From: Heteronotia binoei
Taxonomy: Eukaryota
DNA length: 64,000 nucleotides
Assembly: GCF_032191835.1 (NCBI RefSeq)
Contig: NC_083227.1
Location: 17,174,001 to 17,238,000 of the forward strand
Direction: 5' to 3'
The notes beneath the pieces are model-generated. The model had not been told where the DNA came from. It ran no database searches and saw nothing but the letters and a program-made list of their open reading frames with translations. Below, in pieces: positions 3,860 to 62,389 of this stretch (positions are counted from its first letter, which is position 1; each line of letters starts with the position of its first letter). The position numbers and the translations under genes are program-made.

Positions 3860-5532
3860 AAATTTAGGCTGCTAGGCGGGAGACTTAAGGCCAGGACCTC
3901 GAAGGTAGCCTTCTCGGAAGTGCTACCTGTTCCATGTGCAGGGCTGGAGAGACAGGCACAAATTAGAAGTGTGTGGATGAGACGATGGTGTAAGGAGGAA
4001 GGGTTTAAGTTTGTTAGGCACTGGGATGCTTTCTGGAACAAGCGGGAGCTGTACAAAAAAGTCGGTCTCCACTTGTCCCCGGATGGAACCAGGCTGCTGG
4101 TGCTTAAAATCAAAAAGGTGGCAGAGCAGTTTTTAAACTAAATCTAGGGGGAAAGCCGACAGGAGATGAAATGTCTCTGGTTCGGGAAGACTCATCTCAA
4201 AGAGATGAAGGGTTAGCTGATACTTTTCTACCAGGTAATGGAACAGAGTTGTCCACTGAGACGGTGACAAACAGAATGGACTGCCTGCCAGAGTCTCGAG
4301 GCGGCAGGAGGAAGGTGGCGGGCGTAGCTTGCCTAGGAAATTATAGATGTATGTACGCAAATGCTAGAAGTCTTCGAAGTAAAATTGGTGAGTTGGAATG
4401 TTTAGTGTTGAGAGAAAACATAGACATTGTGGGAATTTCAGAAACTTGGTGGAATGAGGAGAATCAGTGGGACACGGTGATTCCTGGATATAAGTTATAC
4501 TGGAAGGATAGAACAAGAAGATATTGGATTTATATCCCGCCCTCCACTCCGAAGAGTCTCAGAGCGGGTCACAGTCTCCTTTACCTTCCTCCCCCACAAC
4601 AGACACCCTGTGAGGTGGGTGGGGCTGAGAGAGCTCTGACAGAAGCTGCCCTTTCAAGGACAACCTCTGCCAGAGCTATGGCTGACCCAAGGCCATGCTA
4701 GCAGGTGCAAGTGGAGGAGTGGGGAATCAAACCTGGTTCTCCCAGACAAGAGTCCGCACACTTAACCACTACACCAAACACCACTACACTACACCAAACT
4801 GGCTCTGGATAGGGAGGGAAGGGTTGGAGGTGGGGTGGCTCTGTATGTCAGAGAGGGCATACGGTCCAGTAAGACTGAGGTCAGAGAATTAGACTCCCTT
4901 ATAGAAATGCTTTGGGTTGAAATAGAGGGCCCAAAAGGCAATTTAACTATGGGAGTTTGTTATCGCCCACCAAATCAAAAGACAGAGGACGACTATAATA
5001 TGATGGAAGCCCTAAAGATGGTGGCTAGACGAAAAAACTGTGTCGTCATAGTTGATTTTAACTACCCACAGATTGATTGGGTCAATTGTTCTCGTCGAGA
5101 GAAAGAGACCGAGTTTCTAGATGCTCTCAATGACTGTGCTATGGAGCAGATGGTCACAGAACCTAGAATGATTACAGGCTTGGAACACTTTCCCTATGAA
5201 GAAAGGTTAAAACGCTTGGGGCTCTTTAGCTTGGAAAAACGTCGACTGCGGGATGACATGATGGAGGTTTACAAGACTATGCATGGGATGGAACAGGTAG
5301 AGAAAGAAGTACTTTTCTCCCTTTCTCACAATACAAGAACTCGTGGGCATTCAATGAAATTGCTGAGCAGTCAGGTTAGAACGGATAAAAGGAGGTACTT
5401 CTTCACCCAAAGGGTGATTAACATGTGGAATTCACTGCCATAGGAGGTGGTGGCAGCTAAAAGCATAGCCAGCTTCAAGAGGGGATTGGATAAAAATATG
5501 GAGCAGAGGTCCATCAGTGGCTATTAGCCACA

Positions 5533-13194: not shown

Positions 13195-13774
13195 CAAGGA
13201 TGTCAAACATTTAGCCCAGGGGCTGAATCAGGCCCCCAGAGAGCTTCTATCATGTCCCTGAGCAACTGGCTGTCCTCTGCTTCCTTCTCCCTATCTCTTG
13301 CCTTCTTCATAACAGCTTTCTTTGCAAGGCTTGCTCAATCGCACAGAAGCTACAGAGCAAAACCTCTGTTTTCTCCATTGGTTGAGGCTCCTCCCTTGAG
13401 GAGGAAGGGGTGAAGGTAGTTTATTTTTCTAGGCTCTTTCAATCATACAGCAGAGCTACTGAGCCAAGCCTCCCTCCCTTCTATTGGCTGAGGCTCCTTC
13501 CTCCCATGGGGAAGGAAGGAAAAAGCCATAGCTTACTTTCACCTGGATCCCATGGGAGAAATACAAAGAAAGCAGCTTTAAGACCAATGAGTGCTAACAT
13601 TTTAAGCATGTTTTAAGGTTTTTTAAAAAATTAATTGTGTTTGTGTCCTTCATAAAGTTTATATATTTGCTACCTAATCTTAAATAGGTACATGCCTGGC
13701 CTGACATGGCCCGGCCCAACAAGGTCTCATTTATGTCAGATCTGGCCCTCATAAAAATGAGATTGACACCCCTG
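13195..13774 (+). mobile_element. hAT (Charlie-like) non-autonomous element
   Basis: TIRs CAAGGATGTCAAAC / ATTGACACCCCTG with 8-bp TSD-like CCCTAGAA / TCCTAGAG; sister copies at 37507-38117 and 55581-58078. Confidence 0.8.
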
Positions 13775-14650
13775 TCCTAGAGATTAATTAATTGATTGAG
13801 ATCCTTAGTGATATAAACTGTCATGGACCAATCTAGTGGCACCTCAAAGCTTCTCCTGGTTAGGAACTTCCTGGACATTTTGGGGTGGAGTGCGGGGTTG
13901 CATTAGAAGAAGGACCTCAGAGAGGTATGATGCCATACAGTCCAAAGTAACAGGTTTCTGCGGGGGGACTGATCTCTTTAGTCTCTCAAGATCAATTCCA
14001 GAACTCCAGGCAGCCCTAGAAATTGGCAACTGTAATCCATTGTGGGATACAGTGCCATAGAGTCCACCCCTAAAGTATCCATTTTCTCCAGGGGACCTGA
14101 TCCCTGTTGACTTAAGATGAGCTCTGATTCCAGGAGATCAGGCCTCATTTGGAGACTTGCATCTCTAACTACTTCACACTGGCTCTCACTACATAGATTT
14201 GTGATCTAATCCAACAGAGCTTTTCTGATGTCCATTTGGGATCTAGCCTTATGACTTGATACACAGCTACTAAGGGATGAATATGCAGGTATGAACCAGC
14301 CCCTTAAGAACACCTGTATTTCTAACCAATTGGTTCCCTAAAAACCAAGACCTGGTTTACACAAATAGCAGATTGAGGTCATGGAATTCTGAAGTGCTGG
14401 GCTTAATAGGAACACTTCAGAATGCATGTGAGAATCTTTCTCTAAAGTTAAAAAGGGGGGTGGGGGGTGGAATCTCACAAGTGAAAACCGATCATATCAT
14501 AGCCTTGCTCATGATCACACAAAACTCCCTAATACTGAATTAGACCCTCAGTCCATCAAAGTCAGTATTGCCCACTCAGATTGGCAACGGCTCTCCAAGG
14601 TCTCAGACAGAATCTTTCATTCCCCTTACCACTTGGTCCTTTTTTAATTG

Positions 14651-28310: not shown

Positions 28311-28797
28311 ATAGAATCACAGAATCATAGAGTTGGAAGGGACCTCTAGAGTCATCCAGTCCAACCCCCTGCACAATGCAGGAAACTCACAAACACTTCC
28401 CCCTAAATTCACAGGATCTTCATTGCTGTCAGATGGCCATCTAGCTTCTGTTTAAAAATCTCCAAAGAAGGAGAACCCACCACCTCCCGAGGAAGCCTGT
28501 TCCACTGAGGAATTGCTCTAACAGTCAGGAAGTTCCTCCTAATGTTGAGCCGGAAACTCTTTTGGTTTAATTTCAACCCACTGGTTCTGGTCCTACCTTC
28601 CAGGGCCACAGAAAACAATGCCACACCATCCTCTATATGACAGCCATTCAAGTATTTGAAGATGATGATCATATCACCTCTCATCTGCCTCCTCTCCAGG
28701 CTAAACATCCCCAGCTCCTTCAACCTTTCCTCATAGGACTTGGTCTCCAGACCCCTCACCATCTTCGTCGCCCTCCTCTGGACCCGTTCCAGCTTGG
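28311..28797 (-). mobile_element. CR1 LINE 3' fragment
   Basis: ORF 28409-28807 LERVQRRATKMVRGLETKSYEERLKELGMFSLERR...WNRLPREVVGSPSLEIFKQKLDGHL; CATAGAATCACAGAATCATAG tail. Confidence 0.9.
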
Positions 28798-29000
28798 TCA
28801 CACACACACAGTTAGCCTGACCTACCTCGAAAGGTTGTTCTTATAAGAATGAAATGGATGGGAGAACAATGTAAGCGGCTTTGGATCCCCACTGGGAAGA
28901 AATGCAGGATATAAATCACGGGTTTTTAAAGATTTTTTTTTTAAAAAGTAAAACCTATGCAAGGAATTGCTAGGAAACACAGAGTTTAGCTACATCAGTG

Positions 29001-37506: not shown

Positions 37507-38117
37507 CAGGGGTGTTAAACATGCAGCCTGGGGGCTGAATCAGGCGCCTGGAGGGCTCCTATCAGTGCCCTGAGCAACTGGCTGTCATCTGCTTTCTTCT
37601 CCGTCTCTTTTGCTTTCTTCTGCATCACAGCTTGCTTTGCCAGGCTTGCTCAATTGCACAGGAGCTACAGAGCAAAACCTCGATGTTCCCCATTGGCTGG
37701 GGCTCCTCGGGGAGGAAGGGGGGAGGCAGAGCTTGCTTTGCAAGATTCTCTCTACTGCACAGCAGAGCTACTGAGCCAAGCTTCTCTTCCTTCTACAGGC
37801 TGAGGCTCCTGCCCCCTCCTGGTCCCCTGGGAAAGGAAGGAAAGATCCAGAGCTTCCTTTGTTCAGTTCCCTGGATCCCACAGTAGACATACAAAGAAAG
37901 CACCTTTAAGACCAATGAGTGCTAATGTTTTAAGCATGTTTTATTTTGCTTTTAAAAAATCTTTAATGGTGCTTGTCTGTGTCTGTTTATAAAGTTTCTA
38001 TGTCTGCTACCTAATCTTAAATAGGTACACACATGGCCTGGCCCAACATGGCTCAGCCTGACAAGGTCTCATTTATGTTAGATCTGGCCCTCATAACAAA
38101 TGAGTTCGACATGCCTG
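37507..38117 (+). mobile_element. hAT non-autonomous element (same family as 13195)
   Basis: TIRs CAGGGGTGTTAAAC / GTTCGACATGCCTG; TSD-like TTCTGGCT / CTCTAGCT. Confidence 0.8.
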
Positions 38118-39029
38118 CTCTAGCTGGAGATGCTGGCGACTGAACCTCTGACTTTCTGCCTGCAAAGCAGATGCCCTGCCACAGAGCCATACAGCCCATG
38201 GTGTTAATTCTGTTTTAGTTTTTGCACTTAAGTACAGCACAAAGGGCTGGCATGTGGGAGTTGGCCACGTAGGTGGCCACCTAGGGCGCCATTGATCTCC
38301 AGACTACAGAGATTAGTTCCCCTGGCTGGGAGTGGGCACTCCTCCTCCCTGCTTGCGCCTCCTAGTCCAAATGTGCTGCCCTCCCTGCTCAGCCCCTTCT
38401 AGATCCATGCTTCAGCACAGATGTGGAAGGGGCTGAATGGGGTGGGAGGGGTGGTGTGCGATGCATTTGCTCACATCGGAGGTGTTCAGAGCAGCTCCGA
38501 ACACCTCAAAGGCAAGTGAAAGCGTCACACACTGCTCCCACCCAGCCCCTTGCAGGTCAGGGGCTGTGCTGAGCAGCATGTCTGCTTGCCTCGGAGGCAT
38601 TTGGAGCTGCTCAAAACACCTCAGACGTGAACAAATGCGTCATGCGCTGCCCCTGCCCAGGCTCCACCCCTCAAATCTCCATCTCAAAGGACTGGACAGA
38701 GTGATGTGTGCCCTACCTCCTTGCCTGGGGTGCTGGAGACCCCAGTGCTGGCACTGAGCACAAAAGGTTTTGCTTGTGTATTTCCTAGCCCCAAAAGTCC
38801 AATGGGACTTGATGTTCAAGTAAAGAGTTTCCCACAGTGTAAGTACATATTTTATCCCTAAAACATTAACAGCCTGCCTTTCCCCCTAACCTAAATTGGG
38901 GGGGGGGGGTGGCTTCCATCTAAAACGTAAACCATTTACAACACAGAACAATGCATTCTAATCTACATAGAACAAAGCAAAAACTTATAGGGGGCTGACA
39001 AAACAGAGCATATGAAACCCTGACTTGGA

Positions 39030-54200: not shown

Positions 54201-54488
54201 ACTGGGAAGGGGGGAGGGATTCCTATATCAATATACTTTCTCATTTCATTGTGACACCTGAATGGAAATCCTTACTTGTGTGTATGTTATTTTTCATCTT
54301 TACCAATTTTTGCTTCTTTTCCCATTCCTTCGACTTGTATAACCTGCTATAAAATTTAATAAAATCAAAACCTCCCCAAGGTTCTTTAAATTTCACATTT
54401 CTGGTGATTCATTGATTCATGTGTGTATGTTTTGGGTTTTTTTCCAGAGCATTTTGGGGGTGAAACTGGCAGTTTCCCCCCCTGGGAA

Positions 54489-54596
54489 ATGGAGAACTGG
54501 GCCAAGGAACGTGGCCCAGAAATCTGTGCTCAGGTAGTTGCCTTGGCAGAGGATTTCCTCCTGAGGCAGCGTGAAGCTCAGAGATGGGATCCGCAG
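54489..54596 (+). CDS. ZF-4 first coding exon: C-terminal part of a SCAN domain only
   Basis: Acceptor tttttttccag| at 54448, gaaATGG at 54489, MENWAKERGPEICAQVVALAEDFLLRQREAQRWDPQ, donor CAG|GTGAGT (phase 0). Confidence 0.7.
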
Positions 54597-55580
54597 GTGA
54601 GTGAACTTCATCCTGGTACTCAGAGGGTCCCAGAGCTAGAAACAGCAGAGGGACAGCTGAAGATCTAAGTGGGTCTTAGGCACAGGTTGTAGTTTACAGC
54701 TCCCTTCCTCCTCCCCCACCTTATTTTGCTGTTCCCTCTCTTCCCATCTTAAATTTCCCTTCCTTTTCCCATCTCCTATGTCATGGCTCCACTGGAGAGG
54801 TAATCACACATTTCCTGATGGAAACAGCACCTTGAAAAAGTAGCCAAGCAGGGCTCCCTGGTGTTCTGGCATCTTATGTTGCTGCCAGATCATCCCTTTC
54901 CCAGTCATTGGTTGGACCTTCCAAAAAACTATCTAAACTTTCAAACAGTGCAGCAAAGCAAAATTATTCACATCCTGGCAATCCAATAGCATGTCAGTTG
55001 CCATGACACATCACATTCACATCCTGGCAATCCAGTAGCGTGGCATAAGTCCCACCCTATGACGAAGTATGGATGAAACAAGCAACCAAGTCGACCGCTT
55101 GTTCGTCAGGGCTGTTCTAATGCACTCATTTGGGGCTCTGAGAAGCATGTATACAAGTACTTTGCAAAGTAGCCAATTTCTTTATGGAATGAACTAACTT
55201 CTAAAGAATTTTCTATTCATCTCCGGCATTCAGTGAGATATATATGGACTCTTTAAAAGGATTCTTTCAGAGGATATTGGTGTGCAATAAATGCCTTTGA
55301 ATATTGTAATTTTACACAGAATGAATTCAATATGTGAATGAATTTGCATGAATTTATTAGATTGTATGAATTCACATAAATATTTTGAATAAAGATTCGT
55401 TATTGTGGATTGTGATACTTTCTGTATCTTCTGGTACCAGCCTATGCACAGTCCTCTCCCTTTATTACTTTTTAATCTCCTGGTGGGGCCTGGTGATCTC
55501 ATGGAATTACACCTGATCTTTAGAGGGCAGAGATCAGTCCCTCTGGAGGAAATAGCTGTTTTGGATGGTTGACTCTATGG

Positions 55581-58078
55581 CAGAGATGTCAAACACATGG
55601 CCTGCGGACCAGATCAGGCCCGCAGAGGGCTCCAATCAGGCCCTCCAGGAACTGGCTGTCATCTGCTTCATTTTCCCTATCCTGCTTTTTTGGGTCACCA
55701 TTTTGTGTTTCTCCCTGGATAAGCCAGGCAGCAAAGCAGCCTTTCCCTATTCCCCCCTCCCTTTTCCCAAAGGGAGGAGGAGGGAGGAACAGCCTCAGCC
55801 AGTGAGGGAGCTTGGCTCTATAGCTCTGCTGGGTGATTAAGTTTGCCAGGTTCAATTAATCACCCTGCAGAGCTACTGAAACATGCCACTCTTCCTTCTC
55901 TTTAATGGCTGAGGCTCCTCCCCCTCGTGCCCTGGGGAAAGAAAGAAAGAGCCAGAGCTTCTTTTGCATAGTCCCCACCATTAGGAGAGCAACAAAGAGT
56001 GCTTTTAAGAGTAGCAATGTTTTAGTGAAGGTATGAGCTTTTTGCCTTGCTACAGAGAGAGAGAGAGAGAGTTTTGTTGGGCTTCTTATGGGTGTAACTG
56101 GGTTCCCCTCCTCTTTTTCACTGTACTAATGCCCTCCAGTCTTTCTCAATAGGAAAGTGTGTGAACTATTTAGAAGAGAAATCTCAACATTAGGCTGAGA
56201 GTGTGTTCCACCCCAGGTTTATCCAGCAAATTTTCCTTAATTTTTCTTTCACATTTTCCTTTGATTGGGGGTCCTGAATTTAGACTTCCCAGATAGTAGG
56301 CTGACACTGACCACTGTACATGGCTGTCTCTCTGTTCTTGTAGTTGTTTTTTTGGGGGGGAAGTTGTATTTTTTTTTTAGTTGCAGTCATTTTTCCGGGG
56401 AAAATTATAGTTTTGTTGACAAGCACATAGCCATGGTGCCTTCACATGTTCTTGCCTAGTACATAAGCAACTTCTGTACAAAAGCTCACAATGCCCAGCT
56501 GCTTCATATTCCTCTGAGTCTTAGGCTCAAAGCATTGACCATGAGATGTCTGTAATGAACATCAATGAATCAAAAGTAGGTGGGAAAAGGTAAAAGTGGG
56601 CTCTACACTGATCTTCATGAATTCATATGATTTTTACATTGAAATGAAATCAAACCACTATTATTCTGTAGATCCTGTCATAGACTATAGGAAGGACCAC
56701 AAAAATCATGCCTCCACGATTTGTGATGCCTCACCAATGCAAAAAACAGGGTTCCAAAGCACGGATCCTCATGAATTCATATGATTTTTACGGTGAAATT
56801 AAATCAAACAACCATCATGTTGTAGATCTTGTCTTAGACTATAGGCAGCACCAGAAAAATCATGCCTCCACGAATCTGTGGTGCCACAACAGTGGAAAAA
56901 CATGTTTCCAAACCACAGATCCTCATGGAGCCTCATGATATTTACTTAGGATCCCCCCAATTCACCATTAATTCTTATATCATGTCCATGGGCAGAGTTT
57001 GCACCACAGAAATCATGGATCCACAGCTTTGTGGCAGCACCATGGACCAAAAACTTGGTTTTGAACCACGGATCCTCATGGATCCTCATGATTTTTGCTT
57101 TGGATCCCCCCAAGCCCACCATCCAATCACATATCGTGTCCATGGGCAGAGGCTGCACCCCAGATAGCATGGATCCACGGCTTTGTGGCAGCACCATGGT
57201 GTTGCCACGAAGTTGAGGATCCATGTTTTCTGTGGTGTAAACTCTGCCCATAAACAGGATGTGTGATTTAATGATGATGTTGGGATAACCCAAAGCACAA
57301 AGCCATGGATCCATGATTTCTATGGTGTAAGCTCTGCCCATGGACATATGTTATTTGATTGTGAATTTGGCTTGACCCAAAGCAAAAATACGATATAAGA
57401 ATTGATGGTGAGGTTGGGGGAATCCAAAGCAAAAATCATGAGGATCCATGGTTTGGAAACATGTTTTTCCACTGTTGTGGTGCCACAGATTCATGGAGGC
57501 ATGATTTTTCTGGTGCTACCTATAGTCTAAAACAGGATCTACAGCATGATGGTGGTTTCATTTCATTTCACTATAAAAATCAAATGAATTCATGAGGATC
57601 CGTGCTTTGGAACCCTGTTTTTGTACTGGTGATTTTTGTGGTCCTGCCTATAGTCTAAGACACGATCTACAGAATAATAGTGGTTTGATTTAATTTCAAT
57701 GCAAAAATCATATGAATTCATGAAGATCCGTGTAGATCTGACTTTTACCCAGACCCAAAGTCGGTTTGCAACTTACAGATGTGCACACCTGAACAGCACA
57801 TATTCAAGATTGGTACAGCACAGATGTCTGCAGTTATTGATGCAATAATTCATAGCAAGAGGTGACATTTATCAGAGACTGTAAAACAAAATATTGCAAG
57901 CGTGCTAATATTTTAAGCATGTTTTATTTTAAAAAATCTTTAATTGTGTGTCTGTGCCCTTTATAAAGTTTATATGTCCGCTGCCTGGCATTACATTTTA
58001 TGATACACATGTACCTGCCCGACAAGGTCTCATGTATGTCAAATCCGGCCCTCATAGCAAATGAGTTTGACACCTCTG
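55581..58078 (+). mobile_element. hAT non-autonomous element enlarged to 2.5 kb
   Basis: TIRs CAGAGATGTCAAAC / GTTTGACACCTCTG with perfect 8-bp TSD CTCTATGG; ends match the ~600-bp copies at 13195 and 37507 but ~1.85 kb of extra sequence lies inside. Confidence 0.85.
56589..57749. repeat. 1.16-kb loopless palindrome made of ~154-bp tandem units (foldback-like)
   Basis: Left end GGTAAAAGT..CTACAC.GATCTTCATGAATTCATATG mirrors right end CATATGAATTCATGAAGATC.GTGTAG..ACTTTTACC; centre ACCA|TGGT at 57196/57197; units start at 56610, 56764, 56918, 57071. Confidence 0.92.
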
Positions 58079-58636
58079 CTCTATGGCATTATACCCCACT
58101 GAGATCCCTCCCCTCAAGCCTCACCTTCCTCCCTACATATATATATTTTTCTAAATCCCTGCATATAAAAACCCTAGTATGTCAGGTATGACAAAAGCAA
58201 CTTTGTCTCAAGCAAGCTAGATTTCCATGAGCAGGGGATTTTTTTAAAAAAAATGGACAAACATTCAGGCATGTGAATTTCTACGTGTGCCCTGGGGTGG
58301 TACAGCCCAGATACAAACTGACAAGCTTGCTAAGTGGGGGCTCAGTCATTGTGACTAGAAACTTTCCTGTCCTCTTTGAAGCTTCCATCCATATTTGATG
58401 CCCACAGTGCTAACAGTGCTGTTTTAAGTGGAGTTATCCCTTTCTAAGCTTAATGACTTCACTTGGCTTGGAAAGGTATAACCTCTGGGGTTACTGTGGG
58501 CAGGGTCTGCCCCCCACTTCTGGAAAGCTGCATCTCCTTCTGCTCAGGTGGCTCAACAGCAGTGTTTGAACATCTGCTGGTACCCCTGTAACAATTCCTA
58601 TCTCTAAACTTTCTGATCCTCTGCTTTGTTGCACAG

Positions 58637-58736
58637 GCAGCGGCCATGAACCTGTCTGATATGGAGCAGGCTCCATCAGACGTGGAACAGGAACAGAGCT
58701 TTAAACAGGAGGAAGATGAGGACACCATCTCACTGG
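58637..58736 (+). CDS. ZF-4 middle exon (100 nt, shortened degenerate KRAB-A-like)
   Basis: Acceptor ttgttgcacag|GCA, donor CTG G|gtaagc; encodes AAAMNLSDMEQAPSDVEQEQSFKQEEDEDTISL+G; phase 0 to 1. Confidence 0.8.

Positions 58737-61159: not shown

Positions 61160-62389
<1,230 letters not shown>

Follow-up and report, generated by a model that had tools for sequence, protein, structure and literature searches.

Is a long palindrome without a loop, built from repeated units and found among lizard genes, a transposon that landed there, or a rearrangement that arose where it now stands? The question is raised by a locus in a 64,000-nucleotide stretch of Heteronotia binoei DNA (contig NC_083227.1, positions 17,174,001 to 17,238,000), referred to here as the window, which holds a cluster of SCAN and C2H2 zinc-finger genes. 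The locus, at window positions 56582-57756, is very probably an old copy, 1175 bp in length and non-autonomous, of a cut-and-paste DNA transposon of the Foldback type. Three traits lead to this identification, as they do for Drosophila FB, Tetris and Tm1: long inverted arms of modular build, a middle domain that is small or absent, and a 9-bp target-site duplication (TSD). Elements of this type are familiar from insects, nematodes and plants and are hardly documented in reptiles according to the literature; no report of foldback elements in lizards or snakes, and no paper on a 154-bp lizard satellite, was found there.

Repeat units, termini and target site

The inverted repeat consists of two arms, 56589-57196 (608 bp) and 57197-57749 (553 bp), that abut at the junction ACCA/TGGT with 0 nt between them. 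These boundaries had been proposed in a sequence-only reading of the window, and they are confirmed by the sequence itself, by a global alignment that compares the left arm with the reverse-complemented right arm (470 matches, 69 mismatches, 83 gap columns, 87% identity) and by a local inverted-repeat score of 360, as against 12 +/- 2 (maximum 20) in 100 first-order Markov resamplings. The whole element extends 7 nt beyond the inverted repeat on each side, giving arms of 615 and 560 bp. These arms are long inverted repeats of tandem subrepeats, and the element is made up almost entirely of a 154-bp unit, arrayed in opposite orientations on its two sides; it has neither a middle domain nor a gene. 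Its parts and its host are as follows.

55580-58078, unstranded: host, a non-autonomous hAT-like element with ends CAGAGATGTCAAAC... and ...GTTTGACACCTCTG, split by the foldback (repeat comparison)
56573-56581, unstranded: left TSD copy, 9 bp, AAAGTAGGT (sequence and read joints)
56582-56588, plus strand: left terminal 7 nt, GGGAAAA (sequence, fold)
56589-56605, plus strand: start of the inverted repeat proper, GGTAAAAGT..., before the first unit (inverted-repeat search, arm alignment)
56606-56759, plus strand: unit A1, left arm, 154 bp, 91% identical to its mirror at 57605-57732 (Tandem Repeats Finder, unit alignment)
56760-56913, plus strand: unit A2, left arm, 154 bp, 92% identical to its mirror at 57451-57604 (Tandem Repeats Finder, unit alignment)
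56914-57066, plus strand: unit B1, left arm, 153 bp, 85% identical to B2 (Tandem Repeats Finder, unit alignment)
57067-57196, plus strand: unit B2, cut at unit position 130 within its own CCATGG and ending at the symmetry centre (sequence, unit alignment)
57197-57450, minus strand: inner part of the right arm, composed of three incomplete, deletion-bearing B-type units and containing a 43-nt internal duplication (repeat search, alignment)
57451-57604, minus strand: unit A2', right arm (inverted-repeat search, unit alignment)
57605-57732, minus strand: unit A1', right arm, with a 26-nt deletion (arm and unit alignment)
57733-57749, minus strand: end of the inverted repeat proper, ...ACTTTTACC (inverted-repeat search, arm alignment)
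57750-57756, plus strand: right terminal 7 nt, CAGACCC (sequence, read joints, fold)
57757-57765, unstranded: right TSD copy, 9 bp, AAAGTCGGT (sequence and read joints)

Tandem Repeats Finder detects a 154-bp period across the left arm, and unit alignment agrees; the earlier description of this arm as two A-type and two B-type units of about 154 bp therefore stands. A and B units are about 60% alike, A1 and A2 82-84%, and B1 and B2 85%. Common to the two types are a head block of 30 nt (CACGGATCCTCATG...ATGATTTTT) and, at the other end, a tail block (...AAATCATG..TCCAC...TTTGTGG). A SINE origin of the unit is unsupported, with no tRNA-like or other RNA-family match, and a paper on SINE-derived squamate satellites mentions neither a 154-bp unit nor an inverted arrangement.

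The arms had also been called mirror images that differ by substitutions and indels. This is accurate for the outer A units, which are 91-92% identical, but not for the inner part, which is 80% identical and has three partial B units in the right arm. Over the terminal stretch, A1 and A2 together, the arms are 92.6% identical (K2P 0.078; 11 transitions, 11 transversions), and the one deletion in this comparison is the 26-nt deletion of the right arm. The inner parts measure 283 nt on the left and 254 nt on the right, with 57 gap columns between them. On the right, the partial B units lie about 90 nt apart and a 43-nt piece is triplicated, so that this region is not a simple mirror of B1 and B2; the inner B parts of the two arms were remodelled independently. 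As a single strand, the element folds into a near-complete hairpin of -446 kcal/mol (DNA parameters). Only GGG of the left terminal 7 nt is mirrored at the other end, where it pairs with the terminal CCC.

The sequence-only reading found no TSD, which is true only at the positions it inspected, GGTAAAAGT and ACTTTTACC; a 9-bp duplication lies 7 nt further out on each side, and RNA reads that skip 1184 bases agree with it. The two copies, AAAGTAGGT and AAAGTCGGT, match at 8 of 9 positions, making the duplication imperfect, and it can be neither shorter nor longer than 9 bp because the bases on either side of it differ. For one fixed pair of positions, the chance of such a match is about 1e-4; considered over all nearby offsets and taken alone, it would be only suggestive.

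The reads come from two contig runs and two raw-read RNA runs, aligned to 55600-58700 at a likeness of at least 82%. In both raw-read runs, reads join 56578 to 57763, skipping 1184 bases with three ambiguous letters, which is equivalent to a joint of 56581 to 57766; since these are RNA reads of the repeat family, the empty sites they reveal are paralogous or allelic, not orthologous. Each run contributes seven such reads, with 6-7 distinct starts and a shorter side of 43-48 nt. Eight more reads join 56581 to 57799 by way of a slightly diverged 57766-57798, and 55 loose ends at 56581 run on as TTGCAACTTACAGAT..., the window sequence from 57766. The skipped length is exactly the 1175 bp of 56582-57756 plus 9, and therefore other copies of the surrounding repeat, possibly including another allele, are unbroken at exactly 56581/57766. 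The foldback at 56582-57756 is an insertion made by transposition with duplication of 9 bp of its target. The earlier proposal of a foldback-type transposon with long modular terminal inverted repeats (TIRs) is thus supported by both the TSD and the empty-site reads. The copy now looks inert, because its arms have diverged to the K2P distance given above, its TSD carries one mismatch and its CpG dinucleotides are depleted.

Affinities of the element

From TSD length and shape alone, there is roughly an even chance that the superfamily of the foldback is Mutator/Foldback. Mutator elements have TSDs of 9 bp (8-11), those of the structural Foldback group, to which FB, Tetris, Tm1 and type 2 foldback MULEs belong, are 8-10 bp and mostly 9, and the 9 bp found here agree with both. 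The 7-8-bp TSD of the P superfamily (Galileo-like) and the 8-bp TSD of hAT elements do not fit the foldback, and the latter is found in the surrounding host element. The copy would have been mobilised in trans by a transposase encoded elsewhere, most likely of the Mutator/Foldback lineage.

Several described systems resemble the element. Tm1, a Mutator/Foldback family of root-knot nematodes, has 9-bp TSDs and composite TIRs that are about 93% alike within an element (PMC3169594). Tandem-repeat TIRs of unequal length at the two ends, non-coding MITE-like members of about 1 kb and asymmetric 7-bp end motifs outside the inverted repeat (here GGGAAAA and CAGACCC) are further points of likeness (PMC3169594). 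The likeness is one of description: the Tm1 unit is about 14 bp in contrast to 154 bp here, Tm1 has a middle region, and its host is a nematode. Tetris of Drosophila virilis is likewise non-autonomous, with 220-bp tandem units in its TIRs, 8-10-bp TSDs and many rearranged forms, and it too was assigned to Mutator from TSD length alone (PMC4079207). Tetris differs in having a middle domain and in TIRs that are divided into terminal and inner domains; its units, in addition, have expanded into satellite arrays.

Muta1, a foldback-type MULE of Aedes aegypti, likewise has a TSD of 8-9 bp and, within its TIR, subterminal tandem repeats, although it is autonomous, 3.2 kb long and has a 145-bp TIR of nine 12-bp repeats (PMC5499845). 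It is the sole case in which such repeats have been shown to strengthen transposase binding and cleavage: the more subterminal repeats, the stronger the binding and the better the cleavage (PMC5499845). By analogy with Muta1, the repeated units of the lizard element may have served as an array of transposase-binding sites.

In structure, the element also resembles Foldback (FB) of Drosophila melanogaster, which has long modular inverted repeats of tandem units and a 9-bp TSD. Work by Truett et al. in 1981 and by Potter in 1982 is said to have described some FB copies with loopless, abutting arms, and a higher-order arm repeat of about 155 bp. FB arms are composed, however, of 10-, 20- and 31-bp subrepeats, and no such sub-period is seen in the foldback studied here. 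Galileo, a foldback of the Drosophila P superfamily, has long, internally repetitive TIRs. Its TSD is 7 bp, whereas that of the lizard element is 9 bp.

A foldback-shaped, non-autonomous element could instead belong to another superfamily with 8-9-bp TSDs, above all Merlin, in which case the cut-and-paste movement in trans would be the same and the enzyme different. This reading is unlikely. The autonomous members of Merlin encode IS1595-type DDE transposases, those of the Mutator superfamily MULE-type ones. Merlin elements have 8- or 9-bp TSDs, a conserved terminal 5'-GG and TIRs of 24-462 bp (PMC8101967), and the lizard element starts with GGG, ends with CCC and has a 9-bp TSD. Merlin has been reported in vertebrates (fish, frog and human relics), whereas vertebrate MULEs are doubted: a eukaryote-wide study confirmed no vertebrate MULE transposases, which are possibly absent (PMC6446971). 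The foldback shape, moreover, arose in more than one superfamily (PMC4079207). Against Merlin, the arms of about 590 bp are longer than the quoted TIR range. Merlin TIRs are not usually arrays of 154-bp units, the foldback shape is atypical of that superfamily (PMC8101967), and foldback elements with 9-bp TSDs are mostly placed in Mutator (PMC4079207).

That a lizard Foldback family was moved by a genuine Mutator-superfamily transposase, and hence that the MULE/Foldback lineage occurs in an amniote, is a tentative proposal, put at somewhat less than an even chance. If true, it would document a MULE/Foldback in an amniote, against the view that vertebrates may lack MULEs (PMC6446971); the 154-bp units of the arms might also give rise to satellite arrays and rearrangements, like those of Tetris in Drosophila. 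By itself, the locus is a single transposon copy, decayed and non-coding, that lies within another transposon. As a reptile representative of a foldback family, it is of value for its clean boundaries: its ends are known exactly, its TSD is 9 bp long and an empty site exists for it. In Anolis, a survey of DNA transposons names neither Mutator nor Foldback elements (PMC3014272). Exact termini are what a genome-wide collection of the family, and a link to its transposase, would require. Since long palindromes with almost no spacer are potential fragile sites, a family of such elements could bear on rearrangements in the Heteronotia binoei genome.

The insertion nest and the centre of symmetry

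The hAT-like host has a perfect 8-bp TSD, CTCTATGG, at 55572-55579 and 58079-58086. RNA-run contigs contain its end regions in great abundance, and read depth over its parts is tens to hundreds of times that within the foldback. Shorter, internally deleted copies occur in the window at about 37507-38122 and 13199-13786; the window has no empty site of its own because these two copies lack the internal region. The hAT-like element in turn splits a third repeat (55474-55579 and 58079-58113), of which unbroken copies lie at 33218-33092 and 10691-10570, both on the minus strand, among others. A foldback within a hAT-like element within a third repeat makes a three-level insertion nest, and the foldback transposed into a hAT-like element that was already present, duplicating 9 bp of it. 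Within the host, 55763-55940 forms a weak internal inverted repeat (68% over 193 nt), and 55819-55878 gives a sub-threshold match to a mir-122-like hairpin.

The foldback might, however, have inserted into a hAT-like copy elsewhere and reached this locus as cargo of the transposing hAT element. The host TSD is a perfect 8 bp, yet that of the nested, hence younger, foldback matches at 8 of 9 positions, and lizard hAT elements are known from the literature to carry foreign DNA, including other transposable elements. The reads show no other hAT copies with the foldback at the same site, and one mismatch in nine is within chance; arrival as cargo is improbable.

Two further explanations do without transposition. 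In the first, the palindrome formed where it now stands, within a local 154-bp satellite array, through breakage-fusion, template switching or fold-back priming, along the lines of the breakage-fusion or template-switch product of a satellite that the sequence-only reading had offered as an alternative. A spacerless centre within the short palindrome CCATGG is what template switching predicts. On the other hand, both flanks belong to a single hAT-like repeat, in whose other copies they meet exactly, and 9 bp are duplicated. The TSD and the precise rejoining of the flanks rule out formation of the palindrome in place from a satellite. Nor is there a satellite around it; no further copy of the 154-bp unit was found in the 64-kb window, and the arms adjacent to the centre are only 75-80% alike. 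As an account of the origin of the locus, this reading is thus very hard to credit, although template switching or breakage-fusion may yet account for the origin of the centre in an ancestor copy. The second holds that the assembly created the structure, through a mis-join or a long read that was chimeric and palindromic. It draws on the fact that both arms are read from the assembly with no DNA read across the locus, and is the most far-fetched of all given arms set apart by substitutions and by indels (10-26 bp and larger), differently arranged inner parts, a TSD with matching empty sites, and related units in independent RNA-run contigs.

Both arms end at unit position 130, within CCATGG, where the uncut unit B1 reads GCACCATGGAC. 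The arms beside the centre are less alike than the outer units (about 92%). RNA-run contigs with 82-96% identity to the foldback, under two organism labels, contain other unit joins, including other A-to-B joins; a 729-nt contig from the run labelled as the second organism matches 56589-56719 with 8 differences. In the contig joints 57188 to 57045 and 57108 to 56978, B units run on in tandem where the 56582-57756 copy has its centre. Because CCATGG is self-complementary, identity flanking the centre is low and B units are in tandem in contigs of other members, the centre is most likely a secondary deletion or recombination product at CCATGG microhomology, not one of recent fold-back synthesis. 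Such an event would have taken place between the opposed arrays of a longer ancestor copy.

Coding capacity, transcription and neighbouring genes

The foldback has no coding capacity. Its open reading frames are short products of the repeats that match no Pfam family, and the two examined in a word-based protein search, of 101 amino acids (56862-57164, plus strand) and 76 amino acids (56708-56935, plus strand), have no relatives there. No transposase is present in the 64-kb window. Exact-pattern scans of metagenome and viral contigs with conserved A- and B-unit blocks gave no match, as expected for animal DNA. Rfam returned just two microRNA-precursor-like matches, both far below threshold and rejected, of which the one at 57153-57240 is the central hairpin. 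This match, to the mir-561 precursor, scores 37 bits against a gathering score of 90, is centred on the palindrome centre and reflects hairpin shape only.

It had been suggested that the locus forms a duplex of about 550 bp in pre-mRNA that could be edited or affect splicing. The RNA data offer no support for this. All four RNA runs show a depth of zero over the unique sequence that adjoins the nest (58200-58700), and depth within the foldback is 0-20, mostly from reads less than 95% alike, that is, from other copies. Transitions in run X4 are symmetric (A>G 41, T>C 42, C>T 41, G>A 34), and in the aligned RNA reads A>G and T>C show no excess over G>A and C>T that would signal A-to-I editing. 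The absence of flanking depth and the symmetric transitions together mean that there is no evidence of transcription of the locus, of long double-stranded RNA or of editing.

The nest lies between a SCAN-box remnant at 54471-54599 (plus strand) upstream and a zinc-finger exon at 61193-62389 (plus strand) downstream, and it is plausible that the foldback sits in an intron of this gene, labelled ZF-4; nothing indicates an effect on the nearby zinc-finger gene. In the stretch 54423-54668 (plus strand), upstream of the ZF-4 exon, a SCAN box can be recognised by its C-terminal part alone, about 40 residues. The gap from the SCAN remnant to the ZF-4 exon is 6.6 kb, as compared with 1.3-2.2 kb in the three SCAN-ZNF genes next to it. 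It may be that the SCAN domain of ZF-4 is truncated, or that the gene is decaying. Elsewhere in the window, CR1-type LINE fragments at 4171-5443 and 28409-28807 fit a squamate genome; the open reading frame at 4835-5443 has an endonuclease/reverse-transcriptase Pfam match, and a typical CR1 C-terminal tail sequence is also present.
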